Shown here one piece after another: positions 1 to 45,784 of a stretch of 64,000 nt of DNA; within the stretch, counting starts at the first letter, position 1; each line of letters starts with the position of its first letter. Below the pieces are notes generated by a model. That model saw nothing but the letters and a program-made list of their open reading frames with translations. It was not told where the DNA came from and did no database searches. Source of the stretch: Macrostomum lignano (taxonomy: Eukaryota); assembly GCA_002269645.1 (NCBI GenBank), contig NIVC01002024.1, positions 62,001 through 126,000 on the forward strand, written 5' to 3'. A program made the translations under genes and the position numbers.

Positions 1-3000
1 GCTTCTGTCACCGTGACGGGCTTCAATGTGACCTGTCTTGATGTAGAGTGGCCAGCCTCCAATACGTCAGGTGTGACATACAACCTGACCTGTGGCTCCG
101 ATTCTCCGATTGATGCCGGCCGAGAGCTGAAAGGCAGTTGCTGCGGTCTGCAGTCAGGAGAGAACCACACGGCAACTGTTGTTGTGGTTAAGGCTGGCTT
201 TAACAACAGCTCTCCCGCCAGTATAGTGGGACAGACTCGTGAGTTTTTACACCCGATGTTTCTGAGTTTCTTGCCTCAGCGCCGGGGCATTGTTTGATTC
301 GAATTGTGCACTGAAACCCAGCAAAGGCTTTGCAGTTAGTCTGTAGAAATCGAATTTGAAAATCAAGGAAAGTTTCAAGCAGTGCAATTAGGGCACAAGA
401 GTGCATTCTATTCACTCACCTTTACTCATAAGTAGTTTTTGTGACGTGGCTTCTTCGATGTTTTTGTGAGGCTTCCGACGTGCATGTAACTTACTGTCAT
501 TTTACAGAGCACTTATGAGGGGTTAATTATTGACCGGAAAGTCCTAACTTACTACTTTCAGTAGCGTAGTGATCTTTTAAGTTTTTTTTGCAACAGCTAT
601 CCAACAATAGCGCACGATTTATTGTGCTCTAACTGACCTTATTTGTAACACGAATTGCAACCCGGTTTTAGTGGTGTCACCTGTGGCTTCTGTCACCGTG
701 ACGAACTCCAATGTGACCTGTCTTGATGTAGAGTGGCCAGCCTCCAATGCATCGGATGTGACATACGAGCTTGACTGTGGGTCAGGTGCAATTAAAGTGG
801 ACCCAGGAACCTCAGGCTCCTGCTGCGGTCTGCAGTCAGGAGAGAACCACACGGCAACTGTTGTTGTGGTTAAGGCTGGCTTTAACAACAGCTCTCCCGC
901 CAGTACAGTGGGACAGACTCGTGAGTTCAGCAGCTCTGTGTGCTCAGATGAGCTGCTCTGAGTCAGATGGCTTTGTTGCTGTGATGCTTTGCGGCTTTTA
1001 GGGATGTTGATTGACAGGGCTGAAGTTTGATTTTTCTGAATTAAATTCCTCTGCAAATCGGAGTGCTTGATGCTTAATTGCTCAGCTGACGCAGGCCTTT
1101 AATTCGACTGTGATGCTTTGCGGCTTTTAGGGATGTTGATTGACGGGGTTGAGCTTTAACTGACGGCTTTGATTTTTATAAATTACTCGTAAATTCCTCT
1201 GCAAAGCAGAATGTAAGTTTACGACAGTTTTTGCCAGGTAGCGAGTTCACCCATGCTTAATAGCTGATCTGACGCAGGCTTGTAATTCAATTTTCAAAGT
1301 GTTGAAAAAATTGCTGTGGATGTGGTGCAACTTTAAGGCCAATACAAAAGCCTTTTTACTGCAGTGATGTCACCAATGTAGAGATATTTTATGTTTCAGT
1401 TGCGTGGCCTTTAACACAAATTTTCAAATTTTACTGCTTTCCATCGCTCTGATTTTGCAGCAGAAATGATTGCAGCAGCTGATGCAGCTTGAGCGATAGC
1501 TCCGCCTTTGCCTTTTTTCTGAGTTTAAAATTTTTGTAGAGTTGTTTTGGTACAGTTTGCATCCGATAGTTATTAACTTACTATACCGGAACTGAAGACA
1601 CTGCAGTCAGTGAATAAGTATGAGCTGTATTAACTATCGCTGTATTTAAAAATGCACATTTGTACACCTTGTTTGATTTGCTTCCAGTGGTCGCTCCCGT
1701 GGCTTCTGTCACCGTGACGGGCTTCAATGTGACCTGTCTTGATGCAGAGTGGCCAGCCTCCAATACGTCAGGTGTGACATACAACCTGACCTGTGGCTCC
1801 GATTCTCCGATTGATGCCGGCCGAGAGCTGAAAGGCAGTTGCTGCGGTCTGCAGTCAGGAGAGAACCACACGGCAACTGTTGTTGTGGTTAAGGCTGGCT
1901 TTAACAACAGCTCTCCCGCCAGTATAGTGGGACAGACTCGTGAGTTTTCACACCCGATGTTTCTGAGTTTCTTGCCTCAGCGCCGGGGCATTGTTTGATT
2001 CGAATTGTGCACTGAAACCCAGCAAAGGCTTTGCAGTTAGTCTGTAGAAATCGAATTTGAAAATCAAGGAAAGTTTCAAGCAGTGCAATTAGGGCACAAG
2101 AGTGCATTCTATTCACTCACCTTTACTCATAAGTAGTTTTTGTGACGTGGCTTCTTCGATGTTTTTGTGAGGCTTCCGACGTGCATGTAACTATTGTCAT
2201 TTTACAGAGCACTTATGAGGGGTTAATTATTGACCGGAAAGTCCTAACTTACTACTTTCAGTAGCGTAGTGATCTTTTAAGTTTTTTTTGCAACAGCTAT
2301 CCAACAATAGCGCACGATTTATTGTGCTCTAACTGACCTTATTTGTAACACGAATTGCAACCCGGTTTTAGTGGTGTCACCTGTGGCTTCTGTCACCGTG
2401 ACGAACTCCAATGTGACCTGTCTTGATGTAGAGTGGCCAGCCTCCAATACATCGGATGTGACATACGAGCTTGACTGTGGGTCAGGTGCAATTAAAGTGG
2501 ACCCAGGAACCTCAGGCTCCTGCTGCGGTCTGCAGTCAGGAGAGAACCACACAGCAACTGTTGTTGTGGTTAAGGCTGGCTTTAACAACAGCTCTCCCGC
2601 CAGTACAGTGGGACAGACTCGTGAGTTCAGCAGCTCTGTGTGCTCAGATGAGCTGCTCTGAGTCAGATGGCTTTGTTGCTGTGATGCTTTGCGGCTTTTA
2701 GGGATGTTGATTGACAGGGCTGAAGTTTGATTTTTCTGAATTAAATTCCTCTGCAAATCGGAGTGCTTGATGCTTAATTGCTCAGCTGACGCAGGCCTTT
2801 AATTCGACTGTGATGCTTTGCGGCTTTTAGGGATGTTGATTGACGGGGTTGAGCTTTAACTGACGGCTTTGATTTTTATAAATTACTCGTAAATTCCTCC
2901 GCAAAGCAGAATGTAAGTTTACGACAGTTTTTGCCAGGTAGCGAGTTCACCCATGCTTAATAGCTGATCTGACGCAGGCTTGTAATTCAATTTTCAAAGT

Positions 3001-6000
3001 GTTGAAAAAATTGCTGTGGATGTGGTGCAACTTTAAGGCCAATACAAAAGCCTTTTTACTGCAGTGATGTCACCAATGTAGAGATATTTTATGTTTCAGT
3101 TGCGTGGCCTTTAACACAAATTTTCAAATTTTACTGCTTTCCATCGCTCTGATTTTGCAGCAGAAATGATTGCAGCAGCTGATGCAGCTTGAGCGATAGC
3201 TCCGCCTTTGCCTTTTTTCTGAGTTTAAAATTTTTGTAGAGTTGTTTTGGTACAGTTTGCATCCGATAGTTATTAACTTACTATACCGGAACTGAAGACA
3301 CTGCAGTCAGTGAATAAGTATGAGCTGTATTAACTATCGCTGTATTTAAAAATGCACATTTGTACACCTTGTTTGATTTGCTTCCAGTGGTCGCTCCCGT
3401 GGCTTCTGTCACCGTGACGGGCTTCAATGTGACCTGTCTTGATGTAGAGTGGCCAGCCTCCAATACGTCAGGTGTGACATACAACCTGACCTGTGGCTCC
3501 GATTCTCCGATTGATGCCGGCCGAGAGCTGAAAGGCAGTTGCTGCGGTCTGCAGTCAGGAGAGAACCACACGGCAACTGTTGTTGTGGTTAAGGCTGGCT
3601 TTAACAACAGCTCTCCCGCCAGTATAGTGGGACAGACTCGTGAGTTTTCACACCCGATGTTTCTGAGTTTCTTGCCTCAGCGCCGGGGCATTGTTTGATT
3701 CGAATTGTGCACTGAAACCCAGCAAAGGCTTTGCAGTTAGTCTGTAGAAATCGAATTTGAAAATCAAGGAAAGTTTCAAGCAGTGCAATTAGGGCACAAG
3801 AGTGCATTCTATTCACTCACCTTTACTCATAAGTAGTTTTTGTGACGTGGCTTCTTCGATGTTTTTGTGAGGCTTCCGACGTGCATGTAACTATTGTCAT
3901 TTTACAGAGCACTTATGAGGGGTTAATTATTGACCGGAAAGTCCTAACTTACTACTTTCAGTAGCGTAGTGATCTTTTAAGTTTTTTTTGCAACAGCTAT
4001 CCAACAATAGCGCACGATTTATTGTGCTCTAACTGACCTTATTTGTAACACGAATTGCAACCCGGTTTTAGTGGTGTCACCTGTGGCTTCTGTCACCGTG
4101 ACGAACTCCAATGTGACCTGTCTTGATGTAGAGTGGCCAGCCTCCAATACATCGGATGTGACATACGAGCTTGACTGTGGGTCAGGTGCAATTAAAGTGG
4201 ACCCAGGAACCTCAGGCTCCTGCTGCGGTCTGCAGTCAGGAGAGAACCACACAGCAACTGTTGTTGTGGTTAAGGCTGGCTTTAACAACAGCTCTCCCGC
4301 CAGTACAGTGGGACAGACTCGTGAGTTCAGCAGCTCTGTGTGCTCAGATGAGCTGCTCTGAGTCAGATGGCTTTGTTGCTGTGATGCTTTGCGGCTTTTA
4401 GGGATGTTGATTGACAGGGCTGAAGTTTGATTTTTCTGAATTAAATTCCTCTGCAAATCGGAGTGCTTGATGCTTAATTGCTCAGCTGACGCAGGCCTTT
4501 AATTCGACTGTGATGCTTTGCGGCTTTTAGGGATGTTGATTGACGGGGTTGAGCTTTAACTGACGGCTTTGATTTTTATAAATTACTCGTAAATTCCTCC
4601 GCAAAGCAGAATGTAAGTTTACGACAGTTTTTGCCAGGTAGCGAGTTCACCCATGCTTAATAGCTGATCTGACGCAGGCTTGTAATTCAATTTTCAAAGT
4701 GTTGAAAAAATTGCTGTGGATGTGGTGCAACTTTAAGGCCAATACAAAAGCCTTTTTACTGCAGTGATGTCACCAATGTAGAGATATTTTATGTTTCAGT
4801 TGCGTGGCCTTTAACACAAATTTTCAAATTTTACTGCTTTCCATCGCTCTGATTTTGCAGCAGAAATGATTGCAGCAGCTGATGCAGCTTGAGCGATAGC
4901 TCCGCCTTTGCCTTTTTTCTGAGTTTAAAATTTTTGTAGAGTTGTTTTGGTACAGTTTGCATCCGATAGTTATTAACTTACTATACCGGAACTGAAGACA
5001 CTGCAGTCAGTGAATAAGTATGAGCTGTATTAACTATCGCTGTATTTAAAAATGCACATTTGTACACCTTGTTTGATTTGCTTCCAGTGGTCGCTCCCGT
5101 GGCTTCTGTCACCGTGACGGGCTTCAATGTGACCTGTCTTGATGTAGAGTGGCCAGCCTCCAATACGTCAGGTGTGACATACAACCTGACCTGTGGCTCC
5201 GATTCTCCGATTGATGCCGGCCGAGAGCTGAAAGGCAGTTGCTGCGGTCTGCAGTCAGGAGAGAACCACACGGCAACTGTTGTTGTGGTTAAGGCTGGCT
5301 TTAACAACAGCTCTCCCGCCAGTATAGTGGGACAGACTCGTGAGTTTTCACACCCGATGTTTCTGAGTTTCTTGCCTCAGCGCCGGGGCATTGTTTGATT
5401 CGAATTGTGCACTGAAACCCAGCAAAGGCTTTGCAGTTAGTCTGTAGAAATCGAATTTGAAAATCAAGGAAAGTTTCAAGCAGTGCAATTAGGGCACAAG
5501 AGTGCATTCTATTCACTCACCTTTACTCATAAGTAGTTTTTGTGACGTGGCTTCTTCGATGTTTTTGTGAGGCTTCCGACGTGCATGTAACTATTGTCAT
5601 TTTACAGAGCACTTATGAGGGGTTAATTATTGACCGGAAAGTCCTAACTTACTACTTTCAGTAGCGTAGTGATCTTTTAAGTTTTTTTTGCAACAGCTAT
5701 CCAACAATAGCGCACGATTTATTGTGCTCTAACTGACCTTATTTGTAACACGAATTGCAACCCGGTTTTAGTGGTGTCACCTGTGGCTTCTGTCACCGTG
5801 ACGAACTCCAATGTGACCTGTCTTGATGTAGAGTGGCCAGCCTCCAATACATCGGATGTGACATACGAGCTTGACTGTGGGTCAGGTGCAATTAAAGTGG
5901 ACCCAGGAACCTCAGGCTCCTGCTGCGGTCTGCAGTCAGGAGAGAACCACACAGCAACTGTTGTTGTGGTTAAGGCTGGCTTTAACAACAGCTCTCCCGC

Positions 6001-7039
6001 CAGTACAGTGGGACAGACTCGTGAGTTCAGCAGCTCTGTGTGCTCAGATGAGCTGCTCTGAGTCAGATGGCTTTGTTGCTGTGATGCTTTGCGGCTTTTA
6101 GGGATGTTGATTGACAGGGCTGAAGTTTGATTTTTCTGAATTAAATTCCTCTGCAAATCGGAGTGCTTGATGCTTAATTGCTCAGCTGACGCAGGCCTTT
6201 AATTCGACTGTGATGCTTTGCGGCTTTTAGGGATGTTGATTGACGGGGTTGAGCTTTAACTGACGGCTTTGATTTTTATAAATTACTCGTAAATTCCTCC
6301 GCAAAGCAGAATGTAAGTTTACGACAGTTTTTGCCAGGTAGCGAGTTCACCCATGCTTAATAGCTGATCTGACGCAGGCTTGTAATTCAATTTTCAAAGT
6401 GTTGAAAAAATTGCTGTGGATGTGGTGCAACTTTAAGGCCAATACAAAAGCCTTTTTACTGCAGTGATGTCACCAATGTAGAGATATTTTATGTTTCAGT
6501 TGCGTGGCCTTTAACACAAATTTTCAAATTTTACTGCTTTCCATCGCTCTGATTTTGCAGCAGAAATGATTGCAGCAGCTGATGCAGCTTGAGCGATAGC
6601 TCCGCCTTTGCCTTTTTTCTGAGTTTAAAATTTTTGTAGAGTTGTTTTGGTACAGTTTGCATCCGATAGTTATTAACTTACTATACCGGAACTGAAGACA
6701 CTGCAGTCAGTGAATAAGTATGAGCTGTATTAACTATCGCTGTATTTAAAAATGCACATTTGTACACCTTGTTTGATTTGCTTCCAGTGGTCGCTCCCGT
6801 GGCTTCTGTCACCGTGACGGGCTTCAATGTGACCTGTCTTGATGTAGAGTGGCCAGCCTCCAATACGTCAGGTGTGACATACAACCTGACCTGTGGCTCC
6901 GATTCTCCGATTGATGCCGGCCGAGAGCTGAAAGGCAGTTGCTGCGGTCTGCAGTCAGGAGAGAACCACACAGCAACTGTTGTTGTGGTTAAGGCTGGCT
7001 TTAACAACAGCTCTCCCGCCAGTATAGTGGGACAGACTC
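1..7039 (+). repeat. Tandem array of a 1700-bp unit (just over 4 units visible), each carrying two FN3-like cassette exons (A 252 nt, B 249 nt) plus their introns
   Basis: ORFs recur every 1700 bp (first A-to-A interval 1701); copies differ at only a few positions; every exon has AG/GT and phase 1 on both sides. Confidence 0.97.
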
Positions 7040-10000
7040 GTGAGTGCAGTAGCTCAATCTTTTTTCCCCATTTCTTGCTTATTTGAAATAAAATGCATCC
7101 GTTAATTTATTCGCAATCTGCTTATTTTAGTCCTGTCTCCCGTGGCCAACGCGTCCATCGCTTGGAGTTCAACTTACGAGAGCGTGCACGTGAGCTGGAA
7201 TGCCTCCAGCAGTCGCGACGTGCAGTACTCAGTTACCATCGGCTCAAATACCGCAAAACAGCTGAACGAGACCAGCACGAACCAAACTAGCTTAAGCCCC
7301 GGCTCAGTGCAGAGTATTAAAATCATTGTTAAGAAGGCCGGCTTCGCGGATTCATTGCCGGCGATGTCGAAGGCTCTGACTAGTAAGATGCGGGTTTAAA
7401 TAAAAGTTTGAGCGAACAGGTCACGCTATAAAGCATTTAATCAGAGAAGCTGTGTGTGGATTTACGATTCAAATATTTTAATACGGAGTTAACACAACAT
7501 TTCAGAGCCCCGTCTCAACGCCAGCAGCGCCACATTTAGCACCGACTTTACGCTGGACGCCGTAACGCTGGCCAACTCTGCTCTAAGCGCAGTTTGGAAT
7601 AACACCGTCGCAATTGGTGCAGACTTTCTGAGCATCGATTTGAAATCTTTAAAGCTTAATATGAATATGAGAGAGACATTTGATAAGTTGAAAGCAGAGT
7701 TTAAAGGCGAATACGCCTATTCGGATAATGTAACCATTGAAGTGGTGGCTGTTGCCGAAAAAGACGGTTTGGTACAAAACAGCTCCGGAACTTATACGGT
7801 TGTACAGCGTACAGGTGAGTGGCTGATGCTTGCAGGTGCAATTTATAATCGGGGCTTGCAATCTGTTTAGGGTTGCCATACTCGTATTGGGTGCTTTTAG
7901 GCTGTGTGAGTAAGTATTTTCTTCAGTAGTTTTGGCTCTTTTGTAGTTCATAGTCTTGTGAAACCTGAGGATTGTGAACTTTAGAATTCTCATATGGTTG
8001 CTGTTTGTAGAGTTTAGGGTTGGTGGAATTCGGGGTTTGTGGAGTTGGGGTTTGTGGAATCGGGGGTTTGTGAACTTGGTGTTTGGGGAGGTTCGGGGTT
8101 TGTGGATTTTGTGTTTGTGGAGTCAGGGGTTTGTGAAGTTAGGGTTTGTGGAATTGTGGCTTTGTGGAGTTGGGGCTTTGTGGAGTTGGGGGTTTGTGGA
8201 ATTGAGGGTTTGTGATTTTGGAGTTTGGGAAGTTAAGGGTTTGTGGAGTTGGGGTTTGGGGAGTTAGGGTTGTGGAGTTGGGGTTTGGGGAGTTAGGGTT
8301 GTGGAGTTGGGGTTTGGGGAGTTGAAGGTTTGTGGCGTTGGGGTTTGTGGAGTTAAGGGTTGTGGAGTTGGGGTTTGTGGAATTTGTGTTTTTGAATTTG
8401 GGGTTTGTAGAGATGGGGGTTTGTGGAGTTGGGGTTTGGGGAGTTGAAGGTTTGTGGCGTTGGGGTTTGTGGAGTTAAGGGTTGTGGAGTTGGGGTTTGT
8501 GGAGTTGGGGGTTTGTGGAGTTGGGGGTTTGTGGAGTTAAGGGTTGTGGAGTTGGGGTTTGTGGAATTTGTGTTTTTGAATTTGGGGTTTGTAGAGATGG
8601 GGGTTTGTGAAGTTGGGGTTTGTGGAATTTGTGTTTGTGAAGTTGGAGTTTGTGGAGTTGGGGGTTTGTGGAGTTGGAAGTTTGTGGAGTTGTGGCTTGC
8701 GAAACCTGCCCTTTCACAAGACTGGCATTTTATCTTCATAATTTGATTGTCAATCAATTTCAGATCCTAGCGCGCCTAATGCGACTTGGACATCTGTGAA
8801 TAGTAGAAGCCTCAAAGTCAAACTGGAGGCCACCTCGCATTCTGAGCTGCTCATTGCACAACTTAGCAATATTGCTGGCAACGTCTTATTCAATAAATCT
8901 TGCCCTCGATGGATGCAGTCCTGCGAACTCGAGTTCCAGCCGCTGTCGCCCCACACGAACTACTCGCTTAATGTCAACGCTGCCTATTACGAGCGAACGT
9001 CGCCAGCGGTAGAGCCGAGACAGCAGGAGACTCTACAGGATTCACCAGCGGCTCCGCAAGATGCTCGGGTCACCAACCTCAGCGCCGACTCGCTAAAGCT
9101 GTCTTGGTCGCCTCCGTCCGAGCCCAACGGTGTCATCATTGCCTACACCGTGCGCTGCTTCGCTAACGGCATCGGCTCCGGAAACGACTCCGTGCCGAAG
9201 AACGTCACACTTAACGCCGGCACTAACACTACCTTTAACGCCACCATTAACGACTTGTCTCCCGGAGTCCAGTTCGACTGCAGCGTCACCGCGTGGACCT
9301 CGGCGGGCGAGAGTCCGTCCAGCCCTAAAACTAATCTGACTTTGCTCGACGATCTGGCACCGAGCAAGTCACTGGACGAGGTGCCTCGGTTTGCCAGCCG
9401 CCGTGGGCAAGGCGTGGTTTCGCTGTGGAAGAGTTTCCAGTTTAGCCGAGGCCTGATATTTGAGTACGTCCTGCGGCTGGATAAGATCAACGTTAGCAGC
9501 GGTAACAGCCCCATTAGCTGCTCTTTTGCGGCTAGAATAGTGTGCACCGACTGTTCGCGAAGTCAACTCCCCGCGTTGAGTGAACTGGACGGCTGCTCAA
9601 ATGTGACAAATTCGAGCTTCAGCTTCAGCCAGACTAACGGCCAGGACCTGCAGGTGGACACTGGCGACATTCTGGAGCCGTACACGCCTTACCGAATCAC
9701 CGTGTGGCCGGTGAATCGAGCCGGTCCAGGTCCGAACAGCACCAGCTCCGTTGCCCGAACACTTGAGCAGCCGAGCGATCCAGTTAGCTCGCCAGTTCTG
9801 ACGCCTGACAAGCGCCAGATTGACCTGAAATTCGGCCTGCCAGCCGTGACTCGAGGCCGCATCATGGCCTACACTGTTAGCTTAAGTGCCAGCAATGGAA
9901 GCTGTATTGGGGGCTACGTGATGGACTTGAATTTGACCTGCGAGCTGTCACCGCCGGATAAGTGCAACGTTAGCGACACAGTCAACCAGCTGCTCTCTGG

Positions 10001-13000
10001 CTGTTCGCCGATCTCCAACATCAGCTCGTCGGCACCCATCAAGCTGCTTGGCCTGTGGCCCTGGGCCAACTACAGCGTGTCCGTGACGCCAGTCAGCCAG
10101 ACTCTGGCCGGACAGACTTGGAGTCGCACCGATCGAACTCTGCCGGACACGCCTGATCCACCTGAAGGTCTCAATGTGAAGGAAATAGGAGACACATTCG
10201 CTGTGCTGGGCTGGACTCCGCCTACTATGCTGAATGGCGTGTTCCAGCAGTACTGGTTCAGGATTGAAACAGGCTCTGTTAAAAGTCTTTGGACTTTGCT
10301 GCCTGACTATTCTTTAGAGGTAAGTAGAACAGCAGCATTAAACACCCGTGAGGGCGGAGCCAATTGGGCCAGATGTGCAACCGACAGCGCATCTGAAGGC
10401 TGCGTTCGGCTGTTCAGTCCAAGGACTGGAGGGGGGGGGGTCGCCACACACAGCCTCAATTACCACAGCTAATGTACATTATCCAGTCCACTGAAATGTA
10501 CATCGCTGCTTTAGGCTGGAATTCCGGAAAGGCAATAAAATTGGGGCAGGGGGGATAGTTGGATGGTTTAAAGCTAATAAATCAGTAAGAACCAAAAAAT
10601 GAGCCTTGGCTAATACATGAAAATGCTTGTTTAACTTACTACTGATCTGTAAGTAGTTTATACGCGAATGTGCTGAGTGGCCCATCTAGTTATTCTAGTA
10701 TCTGTGCCTAATTCTGGTACCCAGTTTACAGCTGGGTGAACTGAAGCAATTCAGAGTTAAGTGTCTTGCTCAAGGACACAAAATGTTTCGGGTGGGACTG
10801 GGAATCGAACCCCCGGCCTTCAAGTCGTGAGTCCGACGCTCTAACCACTAGGCTACAACTCTCAGAGTGTGCGAGCAAGGTCAGGTCAGCTGTTCAAGTT
10901 TAAGATGAGAACCTCGCATTCATTCAACATCTCTCTTCAGACCTACCGGGCGACCCCCCTCACTCAGTGCGGTAACTACAACTTTAAGCTACTCACGGAG
11001 AACAATTACGGCAACAGCAGCGAGGCTTCCGTCCCCAGCAAAACAAAAATTGGCGATCTAAGCGCCAGTGTGGTTGTTCGCAACGTTACCGCCATAGAAA
11101 CAACTCATGATACTGTTAAGCTGACCTGGAAAGCAGTTACTCACGGCTTATGCGATGTCAGTTACAACGTAGTTCGGAACTCCTCCACTCCTAAAACGGA
11201 AACTGGTGCAACCCACCTGGCACCTGATCTGCTACCCTACACTTGGTACCATTTTACTATCGAAGCTAAAGTGGAATTCAATGGAGCAACGGAAACTGCC
11301 GCAGTGACGCCATCTGCTGGTATTGTGATTCGAACCGACCCGTACAAAGCCACCAAGCCGAGAGGCTTTGCCTGTTCACCTGTGCCTAATCAGCTCAATA
11401 AGGTGCGATGCACCTGGCAGCAGCCTGATCGCTTCAACGGCGTACCGATCCGCTACGAACTACAGCTGCTCAACACTCCGCCAGGTGTTAAAGTATTCGA
11501 GACTTTGCCTTATAATGCTTCTACGCTAGGCCTCACCATAACCAGCTTGGCCTATATTAAGCCTGAAGATCAGCTCAGATTCGGAGTGCTGCTGGTTAAC
11601 ACGCCTGGTGGAGAAATAAAAGGCTTTGAGGAACAGATTAGCACTCCGGTGGAAATTACACCTGGCAAGGCCTACAGTGTGCCAGGTGTTAATATTCAAG
11701 TGAGTGCGGGGAATGGGACTGACGTGTGGGTCAGAATCACCCCATCGCACTCCGACATCACCCACCTCACTTCAAAATCACCCACCTCACTCTGGCATAA
11801 CCCACCTCACTCCAGAATCACCCACCTCACTCTGGCATAACCCACCTCATTCCAGCATCACCCACCTCACTCTGGCATCACCCCACCTCACCCCAGCATC
11901 ACTCCACCTCACTCCAGCATCACCCACCTCACTCCAGAATCACCCACCTCACTCCAGAATCACCCATCTCACTCCAGAATCACCCACCTCACTCCAGAAT
12001 CACCCACCTCACTCCAGAATCACCCACCTCACTCCAGAATCACCTAACTCACTCCAGAATCACCCACCTCACTCCAGAATCACCCACCTCACTCCAGAAT
12101 CACCCACCTCACTCCAGAATCACCCACCTCACTCCAGAATCACCCACCTCACTCCAGAATCACCCACCTCACTCCAGAATCACCCACCTCACTCCGGCAT
12201 CACCCACCTCACTCCGGCATCACCCCACCTCACCCACCTACCCAGGACGGCGCCAACGTAGAACAAATCGGTCACGAAAAGATCAAAATCAACTTGGAAG
12301 GCTTCTCCAAAGCATTCAACGACAGCTACGGCAAAATTCGGTACTGCCGATTGCTAGTTGGCCAAGACAAGCTCAGCGACGCCGAGTGGACTCTGGACGG
12401 AGATCGCAATTACGCTGGCAGCGACCGGGGCTACAAACGGCCGTACGCGTTCAACGTCAGCTGCGGCTCGGCACCCGTCAACACGGAGCCGTTCCGCGCT
12501 TCATCAGCGTCGAGGCTTGCCGCGCCATCATCTGTCGTCGACGAAACGACGGTGATCATCGGCAGCGGCTCGGAGGATTGCGTCGGCGAGTGCAACGGTC
12601 CGCTGACGTACGAGCAGCCCTACAGAGTGTACTTGGTAGCTTGCACTAGTGCGGGCTGCAGCCTCTCCAATGCCAACATCAAATTCACCACCGGGTTCAA
12701 CCACTTGCTTCGCCAGCTCATCGGTGGCATTGTTGGCGGGGTGCTGGGCGCGCTGCTGGTGGTTGCCATCGTGGTTCTACTCATTAAACGAATGGACAAG
12801 TGCAAGGGCGGGTGAGTCATTGAGCTCTGATCGTAGGGGGTTGAAATTACAGTTGTTGGATGGATTCAGGCGTGAGCAGGAGTGAGCTGGGTGTCTGTGA
12901 AGTGAGCTGGGTGTCTGTGGAGTGAGCTGGGTGTCTGTGAAGTGAGCTGGGTGTCTGTGGAGTGAGCTGGGTGTCTGTGAAGTGAGCTGGGTGTCTGTGA

Positions 13001-14901
13001 AGTGAGCTGGGTGTCTGTGAAGTGAGCTGGGTGTCTGTGAAGTGAGCTGGGTGTCTGTGAAGTGAGCTGGGTGTCTGTGAAGTGAGCTGGGTGTCTGTGA
13101 AGTGAGCTGGGTGTCTGTGAAGTGAGCTTAGTGTCTGCGAAGTGAGCTGGGTGTCTGTAAAGTGAGCTGGGTGTCTGTAAAGTGAGCTGGGTGTCTGTGA
13201 AGTGAGCTGGGTGTCTGTGAAGTGAGCTGGGTGTCTGTGAAGTGAGCTGGGTGTCTGTGAAGTGAGCTGGGTGTCTGTGGAGTGAGCTGGGTGTCTGTGG
13301 AGTGAGCTGGGTGTCTGTGAAGTGAGCTGGGTGTCTGCAGAGTGAGTTGGGTGTCTGCGGAGTGAACTGGGTGTCTGCGGAGTGAGCTGGGTGTTTGTGA
13401 AGTGAGCTATATATCTAATTATTTATCACGTGTCCATATTTCAGTTCGAAACCCCCGGAAAACGCCAATGGGTTTTCTAACACAAACAGGTAAGTTTCCA
13501 CTAACATTTTAATTTTGCTCGGAATTTGGTGTTGTATTACTAAAGTAAAATTTAAATGCACAATCTTCATTTACAAACAACTGTATAACACGTTTAAAGG
13601 TTTTAAATGTTGTTGCTACGCTCGTATACGAGTATGTTATCTCTTTGTTACAAGCTATTTGCGAATTGGCTGGCCTCCCCACCCCACTGGCTGGTCTCCT
13701 TGCCCCATTGGCTGGCCTCCTCACCTCATTGGCTGGCCTCCTCACCCCATTGGCTGCCTCGTCACCTCATTTGCTGGTCTCCTCACCTTATTGGCTGACC
13801 TCCTCACCCCATTAGCTGCCTCCTCACCCCATTAGCTGCCTCCTCACCTCATTGGCTGGCCTCCTTGCCCCATTGGCTGGCCTCCTCACCTTATTGGCTG
13901 ACCTCCTCACCCCATTAGCTGCCTCCTCACCTCATTGGCTGGTCTCCTTGCCCCATTGGCTGGCCTCCTCACCCCACTGGCTGGCCTCCTCACCCCACTG
14001 GCTGGCTTCCTCACCCAATTGGCTGGCCTCCCCACCCCACTGGCTGGCCTCCTCACCCAATTGGCTGGCCTCCCCACCCTATTGGCTGCCACCTCACCTC
14101 ATTGGCTGGCCTCCTCACCTCATTGACCACTTTGTGGAATTATTGCATTGAAGCGCGTTTTTATTGCTTCTATTTTAGACCGGAGTGGTATGAAAGTGGC
14201 TTCTGGTTAGTTTGCTGAAGCACATCTGGAATATTTTCCCAGCTTCTCTAGTTTGCCAGCTTCTGCAGTACAGGCTGTTTTCTGCGGGCACAATTCATAG
14301 CTCTAATCATTTTGTACTCAAGTGTAAATCTAATTGAGTTTGCGCTTAATGTGTAATAATGTGTAATAATAATAGTGAGTTTGTGACTGGTCAATTCACT
14401 ACAAATGGATATTTTTTGGCTAATTCCAATACGTGTGTTTGAACTTATTAAAGGATTTTACTATTGACTGTCTATTTTAAGGCTCAGTTTAGGCCAAAAA
14501 TGCATAATAATTTTTCTGTTTCTTAGTATCAGTTCTCTTGTCTCTTGCCGCAGCTACAGCTAAATCTATAGAATGAAAGCCTTCAGAAACGACACTCAAA
14601 GAGCTCTTAGTCTCTATTTGCTTCTAATTATCCTCTGTTTCCCTGACAAGTTCTTCGTGTCCTTTAACAGGGTTTCACTGTCTGACACGCCAGCCAATCA
14701 GCAGGCAGATTGGTGAGTCAGATTAATTAAAATCACTAGCCAATCGGCTGGCCCCCCACCCATTGGCTGACCGCATACTTGGATCATGATTGTCCTTGGT
14801 CATAACTAGTTAGCTAGATTATAATATTTGAAGTATTCGCTGCATTTCCTCCTCCCTGCCCCTGGGGGAGGCTGAGAGACCATTGAAGGCCAAGGCCAAA
14901 G

Positions 14902-14995
<94 letters not shown>

Positions 14996-15115
14996 ATCTG
15001 CCTGTCTGTCTGTCTGCCTGTCTGTCTATCTGCCTGTCTTTCTGTCTGTAGATCTGTCTGTCTGTCTGTCTGCCTGTCTGTCTGTCTGTCTGTAGGTCTG
15101 TCTGTCTGTCTGTAG

Positions 15116-15149
<34 letters not shown>

Positions 15150-18100
15150 ATATCTATCTCTCTATCTATCTATTTATTTATCTGTCTGTTTTGGTGTCTG
15201 TGTCTGTCTGTATGTCTGTTTGACCTTCACCTGATATCTTTCTAGCGCCAGGCGTAAAACGGCACTAGCGCAGTGATTTATTGGTACTGCAAATTTTTTG
15301 TATATAAATAATTTTTTGGCAACCATTTCTAGTTTTTTGCTACTTAGATCTTTAACTAACTGAAATAATAACATTTTATCTTCATTCACCGGTTTGTAGT
15401 GCAATGTTACTAATTAGTTTGTAGTTTAAAATGAATATTTCAGAGCCCCTCATGGTTAGTTGATTTGATTTTAAAACATAATGCTTTTAATTGATTGACT
15501 GTCACTCGATCACGGTTTAAACTGTGAATGTGAAATTCACATTCTGTGAATTGCTGACCGACTCGTTGGTACAAAAACACCTGCGACAATCCAAAGAAGT
15601 TCCATAGAAATCAGTCCAAAGCTTTCATGAAATTTGGTTTAAAAGAGTTTTATAGTAAATCTATTACATGACAATATTAAAATCCGCGAAAAATTTAATA
15701 GAAATTGAAAAAAACCGCGGAAATTCCATAGAAAACGGTTAAAATCCGCGAAATATTTCATAGAAATTGAAAAAAACGCGGAAATTCCATAGAAAACGGT
15801 TAAAATCCGCGAAATATTTCATAGAAATTGAAAAAAACGCGGAAATTCCATAGAAAACGGTTAAAATTCGCGAAATATTTCATGGAAATTGAAAAAAAAC
15901 GCGGAAATTCCATAGAAAACGATGAAAACTCGGTCGGAACATTTCATAGAAATCTGACGCAAACTTCGCCTTCCAATCCGCAGGTCCGAATCGCCGATTC
16001 CTCGCGCAGTTGCCATCGCCGATTTCCGTCGCTACGTCGGCTTCATGCTGAGAGACAGCGAGCTGGAAGTTCACCGACAGTTCGAAGAGATTAAGGAGGC
16101 CGCTTTGGAACGCGAGCAGAAAGATTTCAGCCTCAACGTAGCCACGGCCGACTGCAACAGGGCAAAGAACCGGTACACGGACATCCTGCCCTACGACCAT
16201 ACTCGGGTTGTTCTCGAGTCAAGCTACGAAGGACCTGGCCACGCTCCGGACGACTACATTAATGCCAACTACATCAAGTAAGACAGATTTAATTTGCTCT
16301 AATAATTTTTACTGCTCTGATTTCTGCTAAAGTCGGTCGAATGCTTTTGCGGCGTGGGTCAGGGTTGTGCGAGTGGGTCAGGGTTGTGCGAGTGGGTCAG
16401 GGTTGTGCAAGTGGGTCAGGGTTGTGCGAGTGGGTCAGGGTTGTGCAAGTGGGTCAGGGTTGTGCGAGTGGGTCAGGGTTGTGCAAGTGGGTCAGGGTTG
16501 TGCGAGTGGGTCAGGGTTGTGCAAGTGGGTCAGGGTTGTGCGAGTGGGTCAGGGTTGTGCGAGTGGGTCAGGGTTGTGCGAGTGGGTCAGGGTTGTGCAA
16601 GTGGGTCAGGGTTGTGCGAGTGGGTCAGGATTGTGCGAGTGGGTCAGGGTTGTGCGAGTGGGTCAGAGTTGTGCAAGTGGATCAGGGTTGTGCGAGTGGG
16701 TCAGGGTTGTGCAAGTGGGTCAGGGTTGTGCGAGTGGGTCAGTGTTGTGCGAGTGGGTCAGGGTTGTGCGAGTGGGTCAGGGTTGTGCAAGTGGGTCAGG
16801 GTTGTGCGAGTGGGTCAGGATTGTGCGAGTGGGTCAGGGTTGTGCGAGTGGGTCAGAGTTGTGCAAGTGGATCAGGGTTGTGCGAGTGGGTCAGGGTTGT
16901 GCGAGTGGGTCAGGGTTGTGCGAGTGGGTCAGTGTTGTGCAAGTGGGTCAGGGTTGTGCGAGTGGGTCAGGGTTGTGCGAGTGGGTCAGTGTTGTGCAAG
17001 TGGGTCAGGGTTGTGCGAGTGGGTCAGGGTTGTGCGAATGGGTCATAATGATTCAGGTGTGTCACAATGAGAAGGCGGGGCATGATGAGGAATTGGAGAG
17101 GAGAGTCATGATGGAAAAGTGAGTCATGATGGAGAAGTGAGTCATGATGGAGAGGTGAGTCATGATGGGAAAGTGAGTCATGATGGGAAAGTAAGTCATG
17201 ATGGGAAAGTGAGTCATGATGGGAAAGTAAGTCATGATGGGAAAGTAAGTCATGATGGAAAGTGAGTCATGATGGGAAAGTGGGTCATGATGGTAAAGTG
17301 AGTCATGACGGGAAAGTGAGTCATAATGGGAAAGTGAGTCATGACGGGAAAGTGAGTCGTGGTTTTAAAACGGTTAGTTAAGGAGTCGTATCGTGGAGGG
17401 TAAAAATAGGTCAAATAACAAACTGTAGAACATTCGTACAAAATAGCAAACACAAAAAAATCTGCTACTTACTACTGATACAAAACTGTGCCAATTGAAT
17501 TACAGGGGCCTGGATCGCGAGCGCGAGTTCATAGCCAGCCAGGGCCCAATCCAGGGCACCATTGACGATCACTGGCGCATGATCTACCAGCACAAGGTGA
17601 CGCTGATCCTCACGCTCACCCAGTGCCAAGAGGGCATGAAGAGAAAGTCGGAGCGCTATTGGCCAGAGATTGTTGGCCAGTGCGAGACCTACGATGAGAT
17701 CAAAGTTTTCCTTGAGAGCGAGAGCGAGATGGGATCCTACACTGTGCGCAGGATGTCTGTCACCTGCTCTACTGACAGGTCGGTACTCCTGTTTGTGATT
17801 ATTTGGGATATGAAGAATAGGATCGTGCCAGAGTCGCTGCAGAATCGCTGAATTGGTCTAAAGCGCATCCGCGTCACTTAATGAATTAGGATCGCTACAC
17901 ATAAAGTCTACTACACACGACTATTGGAAGAATTTTTGCGAATATTTATTAACAACCCTCCAATCTCCATAGAAACCAGACGGAGCCGCTTCAGGTGGTG
18001 CAGCTCTTCTACCTGGGCTGGGCTGACTACAACGTGCCGAATGTCGACGACCTCGCCGACTTCCTCGCCCAGATGCGCAGCTACGCGCCGAAGTTGAGGC

Positions 18101-21100
18101 GAAGCGACGACGAGCCGCCGATTCTCGTGCACTGCAGCGCCGGGGTCGGACGGACCGGCACCCTGATCGCGCTGGACATCCTGGTGCGCTCGCTGGAGCT
18201 GCGCGGCGCCAAAACCATCAACGTGTTTGAGACGGTCATGCAGCTGCGGGCCTGCCGCAAACTCATGGTGCAGACCAAGGTGAGGGTTTGGGGTCACGGT
18301 GCAGACCAAGGTGAGGGTTTGGGGTCATGGTGCAGACCAAGGTGAGGGTTTGGGGTCATGGTGCAGACCAAGGTGAGGGTTTGGGGTCATGGTGCAGACC
18401 AAGGTGAGGGTTTGGGGTCATGGTGCAGACCAAGGTGAGGGGTTGGGGTCACGGTGCAGACCAAGGTGAGGGTTGTGGGTCACGGTGCAGACCAAGGTGA
18501 GGGTTTATTTGGGGTCATGGTGCAGACCAAGGTGAGGGTTTATTTGGGGTCATGGTGCAGACCAAGGTGAGGGTTTGGGGTCATGGTGCAGACCAAGGTG
18601 AGGGTTTGGGGTCATGGTGCAGACCAAGGTGAGGGTTTATTTGGGGTCACGGTGCAGACCAAGGTGAGGGTTTGGGGTCACGGTGCAGACCAAGGTGAGG
18701 GTTTATTTGGGGTCACGGTGCAGACCAAGGTGAGGGTTTGGGGTCACGGTGCAGACCAAGGTGAGGGTTTATTTGGGGTCATGGTGCAGACCAAGGTGAG
18801 GGTTTGGGGTCATGGTGCAGACCAAGGTGAGGGTTTGGGGTCATGGTGCAGACCAAGGTGAGGGTTTATTTGGGGTCATCATGGTGCAGACCAAGGTGAG
18901 GGTTTGGGGTCATGGTGCAGACCAAGGTGAGGGTTTGGGGTCATGGTGCAGACCAAGGTGAGGGTTTATTTGGGGTCATCATGGTGCAGACCAAGGTGAG
19001 GGTTTGGGGTCATGGTGCAGACCAGGGTGAGGGTTTGGGGTCACGGTGCAGACCAAGGTGAGGGTTTATTTGGAGTCATGGTGCAGACCAAGGTGAGGGT
19101 TTGGGGTCATGGTGCAGACCAAGGTGAGGGTTTATTTGGGGTCATGGTGCAGACCAAGGTGAGGGTTTATTTGGGGTCATGGTGCAGACCAAGGTGAGGG
19201 TTTATTTGGGGTCATGGTGCAGACCAAGGTGAGGGTTTGGGGTCATGGTGCAGACCAAGGTGAGGGTTTGGGGTCATGGTGCAGACCAAGGTGAGGGTTT
19301 ATTTGGGGTCATGGTGCAGACCAAGGTGAGGGTTTGGGGTCATGGTGCAGACCAAGGTGAGGGTTTATTTATGGTCATGGTGCAGACCAAGGTGAGGGTT
19401 TATTTGGGGTCATGGTGCAGACCAAGGTGAGGGTTTATTTGGGGTCATGGTGCAGACCAAGGTGAGGGTTTATTTGGGGTCATGGTGCAGATCAAGGTGA
19501 GGGTTTGGGGTCATGAAGAGGTCATAGAGGATGAGTGAAATTATGAAGGTCATAGGATGGAATGGGGTCATTGAATGTGGAAATTAACATCCGATGGTCA
19601 TGAGAAGGTAAAGAAGATCATGAGAGGGTGGGAAGGGTCATGAGAGGGTGGAAAGGGTCGTGAGAGGGTGGAAAGGGTCATGAGAGGGTGCAAAGGAAAA
19701 TTTCATGAGAGGGTGGAAAGGGTCATGAGAGGGTGTAACTGTAAAGTGTCATGAGAGGGTCATGAGAGTGTGTAACTGTAAAGTGTCATGAGAGGGTCAT
19801 GAGAGGGTGTAACTGTAAAGTGTCATGAGAGGGTCATGAGAGGGTGTAACTGTAAAGTGTCATGAGAGGGTCATGAGAGGGTGTAACTGTAAAGTGTCAT
19901 GAGAGGGTCATGAGAGGATAGATCAAATCTGGGTGTTGGTCAACCCTGAACTTGCCAATTCACACCCTCTCACAGGGCCAGCTGGCTTTCATTTATCGCT
20001 TTATGATAAACTACCTGGATTCGCATAACTACTTGGAGCCAATTGACGGTCCAAATTCAGGTAAAGTTGGCGTCGGTGACTTTTTATTATTGTTTCATGT
20101 AATGCGACTGCTTGTAATAAAATCTTTCTTTCAGGAGTATTGCAATTTCCTATGCATGTACTGTTTCATAAGTGTTCATCAACTCACATGGGTGATCACC
20201 AACTGTCACATGGGTGATCACCAACTGTCACATGGGTGATCACCAACTGTCACATGGGTGATCACCAACTGTCACATGGGTGATCACCAACTGTCACATG
20301 GGTGTTCATTAACTGTCTCATAGGTGTTCACCAGCTGTCTCATAGGTGTTCACCAACTGTCACATGGGTGTTCACCAACTGTCACATAGGTGTTCACCAA
20401 CTGTCACATGAGTGTTCACCAACTGTCACATGGGTGTTCACCAACTGTCACATAGGTGTTCACCAACTGTCTCATAGGTGTTCACCAACTGTCACATGGG
20501 TGATCACCAACTGTCACATGGGTGCTCACCAACTGTCACATGGGTGATCACCAACTCACATGGGTGATCACCAACTGTCACATGGGTGCTCACCAACTGT
20601 CACATGGGTGATCACCAACTCACATGGGTGATCACCAACTGTCACATGGGTGCTCACCAACTGTCACATGGGTGATCACCAACTGTCACATGGGTGATCA
20701 CCAACTGTCACATGGGTGCTCACCAACTGTCACATGGGTGATCACCAACTCACATGGGTGATCACCAACTGTCACATGGGTGCTCACCAACTGTCACATT
20801 GGTGATCACCAACTGTCACATGGGTGATCACCAACTGTCACATGGGTGCTCACCAACTGTCACATGGGTGATCACCAACTCACATGGGTGATCACCAACT
20901 GTCACATGGGTGCTCACCAACTGTCACATGGGTGATCACCAACTGTCACATGGGTGATCACCAACTGTCACATGGGTGATCACCAACTGTCACATGGGTG
21001 ATCACCAACTGTCACATGGGTGATCACCAACTGTCACATGGGTGTTCATTAACTGTCTCATAGGTGTTCACCAGCTGTCTCATAGGTGTTCACCAACTGT

Positions 21101-26790: not shown

Positions 26791-27417
26791 AAAGCTTAGA
26801 TAAAGTTTAGCAATCAGCGAGAGTCAGTGCCTACTGATGCGGGACATTAATAATAATAATAGCTATTTAGAGAGTAAAAGACAGACTGTATCGTACAGCA
26901 GCTGCCAACAGCAGCAAACTAAAGGCCACCTTAAACGCTGCAAGTCACTGGAAAATATATGCATGCATACGCAAAGTACAAAGCGCATCCTTGATCAATT
27001 GTAGTCATGATTTACTTGTTTTCATTAAACCTTACTCTCAGCTCACAATTAATAATACTGAAATTAATTATTAAATATTTTACATGTACGCATGCGCAGG
27101 TAATTAGAAAGCATATAAACACATGTAAGCCGGTTCAATCAAGATCAGGCTGGGTAAGGTTCACATACACAAGGATCGCATACGCATGCCAAACCGGAAA
27201 CCCGAGAGAGTGTGTGAAACGAGCGCGCACAGTGTATTTACATTATTTTATGTAAATAACGCTCGCAGATCTGTACTGCAATCTCGAAGGGACAACGTAC
27301 GCACATGCAAAAACATATATTGAAGCGGTGGCAACAAGCTCACCAAGTTAAAATAACTATACACACAGTAAGTCCATGAGATTATATTCTTCTTCGATCC
27401 CATTAATAGCCGATGAG

Positions 27418-43687: not shown

Positions 43688-45784
43688 TCACATCTGACTG
43701 TAGTTGGTTCGGCCAGAACGATTCTTATAGATCCTGTAGGCAAACATGCCGATAGCAACTAGGACCAAGCCAAGCACAATGCCGCCAAAGAATGAGCCGG
43801 CATCGAAACGACCGCCAGCATTCTGGCCACCGGCCGATGTTGTAGCATCTCCAGGAGTGGAATGGCTTGGAGCCTTGGTGGTGCTAGATTTACCTGTGCT
43901 ACTACTAATACTACTGCTAGTAGTAACAGTTGACTTGTCATTAGTAGTAGAGCTTGGCCCAACAGTAGTACTATTGGTAGTTTCAGTAGTAGCATTAGTA
44001 GAGCCAGTGACTCCAGTTGTGCCAGTGACACTGGTAGTACCTGTAGTCTCAGTAGCAGCAGTGGTACTACTATTAGTACCAATAGTAGTTGTAGATGGCA
44101 CTGCAGTTGTTTCTGTAGTTGTGCTAAACAACACTGGATTAGCCAAGCCTAAAATTGATTTTTAATGATAAAATGAATATTTGTTGTGCACAATTTTAAT
44201 CAAATAATAATCAAATATTAACAATATAAACCCCAAGGACTACTCAAATAGAAGGATAGGAAACAACATTTTTTAGAAAATATTAAGGCTAGTTTTCACC
44301 AAAAATACACTATGGAGATAAGAACTTTTCTCTTTTTTTCATATTAAAATTGTTATTGCTTTCAATAGGAGGCAGACCCAATGTTCAACTTTTGATATGT
44401 TTTGCCTTCTTATTGCTCTATTGATATTTATAGAGCTTTTTGTTTAGAAGATTAGGATTCTGTGTAATTTTTTATTGGATATTTTATTTAAATTCAAGGG
44501 CATTGCCATGGATTTTTTGGTAGGGGGACAAAGCCAACTATTATACATGTATATGTTCATGAATAAATTCTTACATATACATTATTTTCAAAATTGGTAT
44601 TGTCAGCACTAATTTTAGCACTGCAGGCACTTATTTTAGCACTGCAGGCACTCATTTTAGCACTGCAGGCACTTATTTTAGCACTGCAGGCACTTATTTT
44701 AGCACTGCAAGCATTTATTTTAGCACTGCAAGCACTTATTTTAGCACTGCAGTCACTTATTTTAGCACTGCAAGCACTTATTTTAGCACTGCAAGCATTC
44801 ATTTTAGCCCCATAGGCACTCATTTTAGCGCCGTAGGCACTCATTTTGGCACCATAGACACTCATTTTGGTGCTACAGGCACTTATTTTAGTACCACAGG
44901 TGCTATGGTTTGGTTTGGTAATAGCCTAGCAATACTATTTATAGTGGAAAATTGATATATACAAATATTTGTTTAAATGCTTTATTATTTATTACAAGCT
45001 TAAAAACCTAGAAAGCTTGAAATTTACATTTAAAAATGAACTTTTTTATCTTTTTTTCTACTTCTCAATAACTTTTATGATTGTGATTCTATAAAGTACA
45101 TGTTAGGTGTACATCTACTATTTTCTTAGAAGTGAAATATACTTACTGTGCACGTCTATTTTTGGCATGCAAGGCCAATAACACCCAAATTTTCAGGCAT
45201 ACTATATGATCTAGAGTGTAGATATAACATAGCTGTAAGTATTACAGTAGGCCTATATAAAACCAGTATTTTATTTATTTTAGTTACTGTGTAAATAATT
45301 CTAGTATTATTCATATGGTACTATGCATATAATGAGTAGGCCCTAGCCAAACAAAAATCATGGCACTAAAAATCATGGAAACCCACCATTGCATCCTACC
45401 CTAATGCCCTAATCCATGTTTAGGAAATTTGTGTATTTGATACTGTGATACAGTGCCTCTGGCCCTCTGTTATAGGCCCTACTTTTTTCAGATTAGGATC
45501 ATTTTGAAAGTCACCTTGGCTTGTCCTTGTCATGTAAAACATCCCTCTGGTCTGTCTATATGGTAAGCCTAGACAGTCCAAAAAGGAAAGTCAATAAAAG
45601 GGGGAAAAGTATATGTTTAAATATTTGCCTATATGGTATACACATACCAGATACTTCTACAGTTTCAGTACTTATGCCTACTTAAGTTATTGTAATGTGT
45701 CATGTAAATAGAAAATAAGAACTTACACTGCAAGGAAATGATGGAAATGAAAAAGCAAACACCGATACAGAACTTTATCTTCAT
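43688..45784 (-). CDS. CD164/porimin (TMEM123)-like sialomucin
   Basis: Exon 1 45784-45727 (MKIKFCIGVCFFISIISLQ, T|gtaagt) joins exon 2 44148-43688 (ttttag|GC TTG GCT). S/T-rich stalk, FDAGSFFGGIVLGL TM motif (CD164: FDAASFIGGIVL), C-terminal NYSQM YxxPhi sorting signal. Confidence 0.9.
44600..44890. repeat. 21-nt minisatellite CACTTATTTTAGCACTGCAGG in the CD164-like intron
   Basis: Direct reading. Confidence 0.9.

Follow-up and report, generated by a model that had tools for sequence, protein, structure and literature searches.

Receptor protein tyrosine phosphatases (RPTPs) of the R3 class comprise PTPRJ/DEP-1, PTPRH, PTPRB, PTPRO and PTPRQ as well as Drosophila Ptp10D, 4E and 52F and C. 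elegans DEP-1. They possess an ectodomain composed of fibronectin type III (FN3) domains only, one transmembrane segment and one protein tyrosine phosphatase (PTP) domain. Most of their FN3 domains are encoded by single exons between phase-1 introns; such single-exon, phase 1:1 domains are the norm in the class, while the number of FN3 domains varies among its members (PMC5336234). The underlying survey did not cover platyhelminths (PMC5336234). Here we analyze a stretch of 64,000 nucleotides from the flatworm Macrostomum lignano (assembly GCA_002269645.1, Mlig_3_7; contig NIVC01002024.1, positions 62,001 to 126,000, forward strand), hereafter called the window. It begins within a tandem array of two alternating cassette exons, A and B, that belong to a gene which we call RPTP1. 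On the basis of its architecture, we accept this gene as an R3-type (DEP-1/PTPRJ-like) receptor tyrosine phosphatase.

RPTP1 resembles the described R3 members in its ectodomain, which is FN3-only as far as it is visible, its single transmembrane segment, its single PTP domain and its FN3-like exons between phase-1 introns. However, it differs from them in other aspects. Its cassettes are very divergent FN3 domains that stay below the Pfam cut-offs, and A and B together form a two-exon repeat unit, a dimer in which the introns, too, are 99.6-100% identical between copies. Furthermore, its C-terminal tail lacks the YxN motif and its WPD loop reads WAD. The YxN motif is not universal in the R3 class, as it is missing in the fly members and in PTPRQ (PMC5336234). 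Homogenized FN3 arrays of variable length recur within the family, with an independent case given by two PTPRH-like paralogs of the skate Rhinoraja longicauda (XP_078286526.1 and XP_078286532.1). The two are 91% identical to each other, each carries about ten near-identical FN3 repeats, and they differ by 186 residues, or about two FN3 domains.

Beyond the R3 class, related cases are the SRCR units of DMBT1, the long homologous repeats of CR1 and the triplicated region of nebulin. The copy number of the KIV-2 repeat in LPA gives rise to a protein size polymorphism. The human KIV-2 unit has a size of 5.5 kb, contains two exons and occurs in 1 to >40 copies (PMC4378929). It is the closest structural analogue of the RPTP1 array, since both are multi-kilobase, two-exon tandem units that are near-identical including their introns and preserve the reading frame. 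In contrast to KIV-2, where one domain is split over two exons, each exon of RPTP1 encodes a whole domain and each unit contains two subtypes. In addition, population polymorphism is documented for LPA, whereas RPTP1 is known here from one assembly. Another parallel is provided by fibronectin (EDA and EDB) and tenascin-C, in which symmetrical phase 1-1 FN3 exons are alternatively spliced without frameshift. These are single-domain symmetrical FN3 exons as well, and sequence and fold matches of the cassettes in the PDB include tenascin FN3 domains and fibronectin EDB. However, their regulated inclusion is experimentally established, while the RPTP1 cassettes are near-identical copies known from genomic sequence.

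The array was recognized as a direct repeat of 1700 bp that spans positions 1-7045 of the window in 4.15 copies. It was revealed by a direct-repeat search and by a histogram of 16-mer offsets with peaks at 1700, 3400 and 5100, and the members of this repeat family start at 1, 1702, 3402, 5102 and 6802. Tandem Repeats Finder, with a maximum period of 500 nt, is blind to an array of this dimension. Each unit consists of exon A (252 nt), an intron of 432-433 nt, exon B (249 nt) and an intron of 767 nt, in this order. The nine exons of the array were placed by means of their conserved donor and acceptor contexts (Table 1). All eight complete cassettes are preceded by AG, followed by GTGAGT, divisible by three in length and open. 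Their sole open frame begins at exon base 3, and thus they are phase 1-1 exons.

A preliminary description of the window had listed nine alternating A and B exons with intact splice sites in a 1700-bp unit. The unit, the order and the phases hold, and AG/GT sites are intact in the eight complete exons. However, the first A exon is truncated, as the window begins only after its acceptor and initial 14 nt. Because the window start cuts this exon, the array may extend further upstream and nine cassettes represent a minimum. The same description had proposed that any subset of cassettes could be spliced in frame, which the phases and lengths of the exons bear out. Nevertheless, such frame neutrality is not special to this locus, because phase 1-1 FN3 exons are the norm among R3 phosphatases.

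Within the window, the units differ from each other by 0-0.35% (identity 99.65-100%), and the previously claimed near-identity of their introns is thereby confirmed. The units at 3388-5087 and 5088-6787 are 100% identical. One difference each was found in the unit at 1688-3387 (1745, C/T) and in the terminal A exon (6788-7039, at 6972), while the unit at 1-1687 shows five substitutions and one indel. Homology between units stops at 7046, 7 nt beyond the last donor. Cassettes A and B share 78% protein identity. At the DNA level, their 3' 114 nt are 96% and their 5' 112 nt 86% identical, and the differences are concentrated in a central loop segment with a 3-nt indel. A transposon or satellite origin of the unit was considered and rejected: minus-strand open reading frames gave no Pfam match, no transposon protein was found on either strand of the 1700-bp unit, and no inverted repeats were found inside it.

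Table 1. Cassette array and further exons of RPTP1, in positions of the window.
Feature	Position	Strand	Remarks
Tandem array, 4.15 x 1700-bp two-exon unit	1..7045	+	repeat search; cut by window start
Cassette A copy 1	1..238	+	lacks first 14 nt and acceptor (upstream of window)
Cassette B copy 1, 249 nt, phase 1-1	672..920	+	unit-specific variants 749, 853
Cassette A copy 2, 252 nt, phase 1-1	1688..1939	+	unit-specific 1745 C: V -> A
Cassette B copy 2	2372..2620	+	splice-context placement
Cassette A copy 3	3388..3639	+	splice-context placement
Cassette B copy 3	4072..4320	+	splice-context placement
Cassette A copy 4	5088..5339	+	splice-context placement
Cassette B copy 4	5772..6020	+	splice-context placement
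Cassette A copy 5, terminal	6788..7039	+	followed by unique 91-nt intron; unit-specific variant 6972
Exon next1, older FN3-like domain, 252 nt, phase 1-1	7131..7382	+	~30% identical to cassettes
Exon next2, 309 nt, phase 1-1	7506..7814	+	spliced model
Large exon, several canonical FN3 domains	8764..10319	+	PF00041, E=1.9e-28
FN3 exon	10941..11699	+	PF00041, E=2.3e-8
Juxtamembrane domain (weak PTP_tm match) and transmembrane helix	12246..12811	+	Pfam, spliced model
Juxtamembrane micro-exon, 45 nt	13445..13489	+	spliced model
Single PTP domain, four exons (15984-16277, 17506-17778, 17973-18279, 19976-20060)	15984..20060	+	catalytic loop intact, WPD loop = WAD
Last coding exon including stop codon	23391..23488	+	spliced model

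To which domain family do the cassettes belong? We conclude that they encode divergent FN3-like domains, as suggested by several weak, concordant lines of evidence together with a significant profile search. No curated FN3 profile of Pfam reached its gathering score for the cassettes. Against PF25300 (Fn3_Dep-1_3rd), with a cut-off of 26, an A+B cassette pair scored 22.9 bits (E=8e-5) and a single cassette 18.6 bits. The same profile was matched by seven of the 11 members of the family formed by the cassettes, exon next1 and the domain encoded by the upstream exon, and PF00041 was weakly matched by three of them (E=1.3e-4). Searching PDB sequences with the cassettes delivered FN3 pairs of tenascin and fibronectin (E=0.02-1), in register over the domain boundary. 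The FN3 fold is a beta-sandwich of seven strands and ~85-100 residues, in which a Trp in strand B, a Tyr in strand C and a Leu in strand E are conserved. An AlphaFold2 model of the cassette comprises seven strands, with a mean pLDDT of just 62.5. Its top Foldseek matches in the PDB are mostly FN3 domains (probability <=0.97, template modelling score 0.49-0.62, E>=0.1). Four hallmark positions (W21, Y31, L54 and G57) are invariant among the cassettes, next1 and the upstream domain, while the tyrosine of the F strand is replaced in the cassettes. Aligned by hhalign with a canonical FN3 domain of the same protein, the cassette family gave a weak, partial match over the B-C strands (probability 14%, E=0.002).

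The significant search employed a profile of the upstream exon, A, next1 and next2, and thus of four neighboring domains rather than of the cassette alone. It matched FN3-array proteins with E=3.7e-69 to 1e-10 and in up to 26 matched stretches. Among the matches are a PTPRH-like (skate, 8.6e-17) and a PTPRB-like (amphioxus, 2e-12) phosphatase. Four top matches, the PTPRH-like protein among them, were scanned and showed strong PF00041 domains, while the PTPRB-like protein is identified by its NCBI name alone. With the profile search, the fold model and the conserved positions taken together, the FN3 assignment of the preliminary description stands in the form of a divergent, FN3-like domain. 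Each cassette carries four cysteines and five to six N-glycosylation sequons.

The assignment of RPTP1 itself is based on the remainder of the gene. As a query, the cassette protein matched Macrostomum lignano proteins only. Through their clusters, two homeologs with annotation were identified: PAA89945.1, with a length of 1687 aa, and PAA46194.1, a partial protein that includes a signal peptide. The gene of the window has no entry of its own in the protein collection: exact look-ups were empty, a 1232-aa query yielded generic FN3 proteins and none from M. lignano, and a 281-aa query matched only the two homeolog clusters. With the homeolog proteins as guide, we built a spliced model that includes all nine cassettes and runs uninterrupted over 2261 codons to the stop at 23488. 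In this model, Pfam detected fn3-type families, one Y_phosphatase domain (4.1e-63) and a weak match to PF18861 PTP_tm (E=1.5e-4, below the cut-off) that points toward PTPRJ. The ectodomain exons within the window comprise fn3-type families only. The N-terminus of the gene lies outside the window, and in one homeolog model (P0006) it consists of a signal peptide followed by FN3. RPTP1 further possesses one hydrophobic transmembrane segment, and its only PTP domain contains the catalytic HCxxGxxR(S/T) motif. Compared against single-domain PDB chains, the top matches of this PTP domain all belong to R3 phosphatases. They comprise PTPRJ (7.8e-53), VE-PTP, PTPRH, PTPRO, CRYP-2, PTPRB and Drosophila Ptp10D. 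These features agree with the earlier proposal of an R3 phosphatase with an FN3-chain ectodomain. In both phosphatases encoded in the window (~18000-18020 and ~38330-38350), W-A-D (LGWADYNVP) takes the place of W-P-D in the WPD loop, and both retain the general-acid aspartate and an intact catalytic loop.

The loci of both annotated homeologs, designated L001 and L002, were found in the same assembly and allowed a comparison of three arrays. Between the upstream FN3 exon and next1, L001 carries 11 full cassettes and one fragment, and L002 carries 10 cassettes. In both loci A and B mostly alternate, the order differs between them, and three cassettes are A/B recombinants. All of their cassettes possess AG and GTGAGT sites, while three of the 21 show length defects of 1-2 nt and are thus frameshifted. 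Considering all three loci, each of the 29 full-length cassettes retains AG and GTGAGT, and none contains a stop codon derived from a substitution. The sequence around the array is collinear among the three loci. In a neighbor-joining tree, the cassettes fall into an A clade and a B clade; every locus is represented in both, and the copies of the window form a tight monophyletic group inside either clade. According to this topology, the A/B dimer arose before the loci separated, while homogenization or amplification was locus-specific.

Synonymous divergence between the homeologs ranges from 0.02-0.045 in the membrane-proximal exons to 0.09-0.15 in next1 and next2. M. lignano is a neopolyploid with three subgenomes, S, L1 and L2, and a divergence of 1.9-2.4% in single-nucleotide polymorphisms (PMC10733133), and the divergence of the homeologs fits these subgenomes. 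Subject to the quality of the assembly, the comparison thus shows that the A/B arrangement predates the split of the three subgenome copies, and that copy number, order and sequence then diverged in each copy.

Taken together, we consider it likely that the window contains a recently amplified or re-homogenized FN3-like A/B array in the distal ectodomain of an R3-type RPTP, formed via unequal crossing-over or gene conversion and in frame throughout. The 1.7-kb unit would comprise exons A and B, each encoding one heavily N-glycosylated FN3-like domain with phase-1 introns as boundaries. This unit would have been amplified recently, or else an older array would have been re-homogenized, in either case through unequal crossing-over or gene conversion between units. 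Since the exons are symmetrical (phase 1-1 and divisible by three), gain or loss of a unit keeps the frame and expansion or contraction would be tolerated. With full inclusion, the ectodomain would exceed that of a one-cassette version by at least nine FN3 domains, or ~750 residues. Very recent amplification had been proposed before, and it is corroborated, or else very recent homogenization is, by 0-0.35% divergence between units compared to 2-15% synonymous divergence between homeologs. By this measure, the window units began to diverge at least ten times more recently than the homeologs. It was further proposed that copy number may vary between haplotypes; of this, instability of the copy number finds indirect support, as the homeologs possess 10 and 11 cassettes, other orders and A/B recombinants. 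We regard these homeolog arrays as real and unstable. However, this comparison concerns loci within one assembly rather than haplotypes or individuals, and within the arrays this assembly is evidently unreliable and in part probably chimeric (PMC10733133). We regard the array as a real but fairly ordinary domain amplification, as expected in a very repeat-rich neopolyploid genome, that involves no new mechanism.

Several observations weigh against this reading, some of them concerning the assembly and others the use of the cassettes. First, the array might exist while its copy number and order are over-expanded, collapsed or chimeric, and its near-100% identity might in part be a product of polishing. 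Mlig_3_7 was made by Canu from early PacBio reads and was polished by Pilon with multi-mapping Illumina and RNA-seq reads (PMC5730564), and multi-mapping short-read polishing can erase small differences between copies. Mis-expanded or collapsed variants were reported for this assembly, with 36% of its length in chimeric scaffolds (PMC10733133). The window begins within the array; if this point were a contig end as well, the assembler would have broken in the repeat. Units 3 and 4 are the identical ones, and the length defects of the three homeolog cassettes are typical of PacBio indel errors. A likely example of a chimera is given by the homeologs themselves. L001 (4000-12450) and L002 (10180-18625) are 99.6-99.8% identical over a segment that reaches from the upstream exon to the seventh cassette and contains a variant A-to-B intron of 2190 nt. 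From next1 onward (L001 16604-19700 and L002 21066-24279) identity drops to ~94%, and the last four to five cassettes differ. Such a drop may mean that the assembly was joined chimerically within the array, or that the subgenomes recently exchanged sequence.

However, unit-specific substitutions mark unit 1, unit 2 and the terminal A exon, and consequently at most one unit (3 versus 4) can be spurious. Arrays of about ten cassettes occur at all three homeologous loci, and an independent model from UniRef (P0002) joins the upstream exon to an A exon of the window type with 100% identity. Moreover, the L001 and L002 copies within the same assembly retain 3-10% divergence, and polishing did not homogenize everything. 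Thus we regard an assembly artefact as rather unlikely.

A second alternative assumes an old array of stable length whose uniformity is due to gene conversion, without any recent gain or loss of copies. The A/B alternation is indeed older than the homeolog split, the loci carry roughly similar numbers of cassettes (at least 9 in the window, 11 in L001 and 10 in L002), and a conversion tract is apparent elsewhere in the window, between both RPTP genes. Nevertheless, order and composition of the cassettes differ among the loci, and the chimeric and fragmentary cassettes of the homeologs indicate unequal exchange. The gradient along the array supports unequal exchange too, as divergence is highest in the units at the edges while the central ones are identical, which is the pattern expected of unequal crossing-over. 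Gene conversion and unequal crossing-over are not mutually exclusive, while conversion with a constant copy number appears doubtful to us.

Third, the internal cassettes might mostly be unused pseudo-exons. In the mRNA, just one or two A exons would then normally follow the upstream FN3 exon, and the array would be neutral intronic baggage. In the homeolog model P0006 the first exon is joined to the last A only, while P0007 uses two A exons, and at least nine cassettes are omitted from the annotated models. In addition, a cassette protein search found no database protein with a B cassette, and the pyrimidine tract of the B acceptor, gcaacccggttttag, is weaker than that of the A acceptor, ttgatttgcttccag. 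The three frameshifted cassettes of the homeologs would fit disuse as well. However, the homeolog models are short-read transcript assemblies, generated by StringTie/TACO and de novo (PMC5730564). Short-read assembly cannot resolve near-identical repeats and collapses them, and consequently the models are no evidence for skipping. All 29 full-length cassettes of the three loci keep their splice sites and lack substitution-derived stops. Since the cassettes carry identical consensus splice sites, inclusion of all of them by the spliceosome would be the default expectation, while variable splicing is formally possible.

Selection on the cassettes was assessed through the ratio of nonsynonymous to synonymous differences (pN/pS) between homeologs. 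It ranges from ~0.6-1.4 in the cassettes, with very few substitutions, in comparison to 0.3-0.5 in next1 and next2, 0.56-0.68 in the large FN3 exon and 0.05-0.22 in the membrane-proximal exons. Along the RPTP1 coding exons (1-18279), pN/pS thus climbs from the membrane outward, unevenly, and synonymous divergence is higher distally too. Between homeologs the cassette exons are 94.4% and 96.0% identical, compared to 97.9% and 96.1% for their introns, and hence are not better conserved. No purifying selection was seen in the cassettes (pN/pS ~1), while the small divergence leaves little power to detect it. A ratio of ~1 and exons conserved no better than introns are also the pattern that unused pseudo-exons would leave. 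The cassette sequence therefore appears weakly constrained, which is compatible with a spacer role, diversifying selection or disuse. Taking splice sites, open frames and the low power into account, we consider it quite unlikely that most cassettes are pseudo-exons.

Tandem duplicate exons of similar length are the classic substrate of mutually exclusive, Dscam-type splicing, but such an arrangement of A and B is highly improbable and was rejected on anatomical grounds, as both exons are phase 1-1 and divisible by three so that the frame enforces no exclusivity, the introns of 432-433 and 767 nt are too long for steric exclusion, and the unit lacks inverted repeats for competing RNA pairings.

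Returning to the amplified or re-homogenized array, its function can be addressed by analogy only. Because the protein sequence of the cassettes looks weakly constrained, the array is probably a glycan-bearing module that provides length or spacing, rather than a specific binding site. A plausible functional consequence of a longer ectodomain would be its height. The large ectodomain of CD148, which is PTPRJ, is reported to keep this phosphatase out of close cell-cell contacts (PMC11399299, citing Cordoba et al. 2013), and hence one way is known in which the length of an ectodomain can affect function. RPTP1 shares the R3 class with CD148, while the likeness of the flatworm protein to the kinetic segregation of CD45 and CD148 is purely an analogy. 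One might further speculate that the array is a fast-evolving tuner of length and glycans, with unit numbers that differ among subgenomes and individuals, combinatorial inclusion, ectodomain heights that differ among worms or cell types, and loops under diversifying instead of relaxed selection. The latter idea is based on a divergence of exons that matches or exceeds that of introns and on a pN/pS of ~1 or more. We consider this far-reaching version improbable; if true, phosphatase segregation by size would have a counterpart in an invertebrate, or the array would serve in recognition. If copy number is real and variable, the locus would offer a clean snapshot of how FN3 chains of receptor phosphatases lengthen, namely by unequal crossing-over that duplicates whole units of phase 1-1 exons, taken while the introns are still identical. 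The three subgenome copies in one neopolyploid animal represent built-in comparisons. Furthermore, M. lignano is amenable to RNA interference and transgenesis, so that one could test directly how an R3 phosphatase responds to changes in the length of its ectodomain.

Besides the array, the window contains a second R3-like RPTP gene in tandem (27352-38805, + strand). It encodes a signal peptide and a Ser/Thr/Ala-rich, mucin-like repeat (27352-28563), and its PTP exons are located at 36834-37103, 37584-37928 and 38301-38609. A cassette search found no A/B cassettes in this gene. Its third PTP exon and flank (38262-38805) are 96.5% identical to positions 17933-18467 of RPTP1, compared to ~74% for the other PTP exons, and this segment looks like a gene-conversion tract of ~540 bp between both genes. 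Fragments of retroelements were detected on the minus strand at 29554-29940, 33804-34403 and 51353-52477, and match two RNase H (3e-8 and 8e-7) and one reverse transcriptase (6e-18) domains. Both RNase H fragments fall within the span of the second RPTP gene, probably in its introns. An open frame on the minus strand (43691-44161) comprises a Ser/Thr-rich region, a transmembrane helix and a short tail. This frame matches Pfam MGC-24 (CD164-like sialomucin, 1.3e-7) and probably represents the terminal exon of another gene. Finally, the introns of RPTP1 consist largely of G/T-rich or C/A-rich minisatellites (8003-8699, 11732-12233, ~16300-17400, 18260-19515 and 20100-21700). Their units measure 15-16 nt at 8003-8699 and 20 nt at 11732-12233, and their translated stretches are open in several frames. 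Such minisatellites are typical of the M. lignano genome, for which a tandem-repeat content of 15% was reported.

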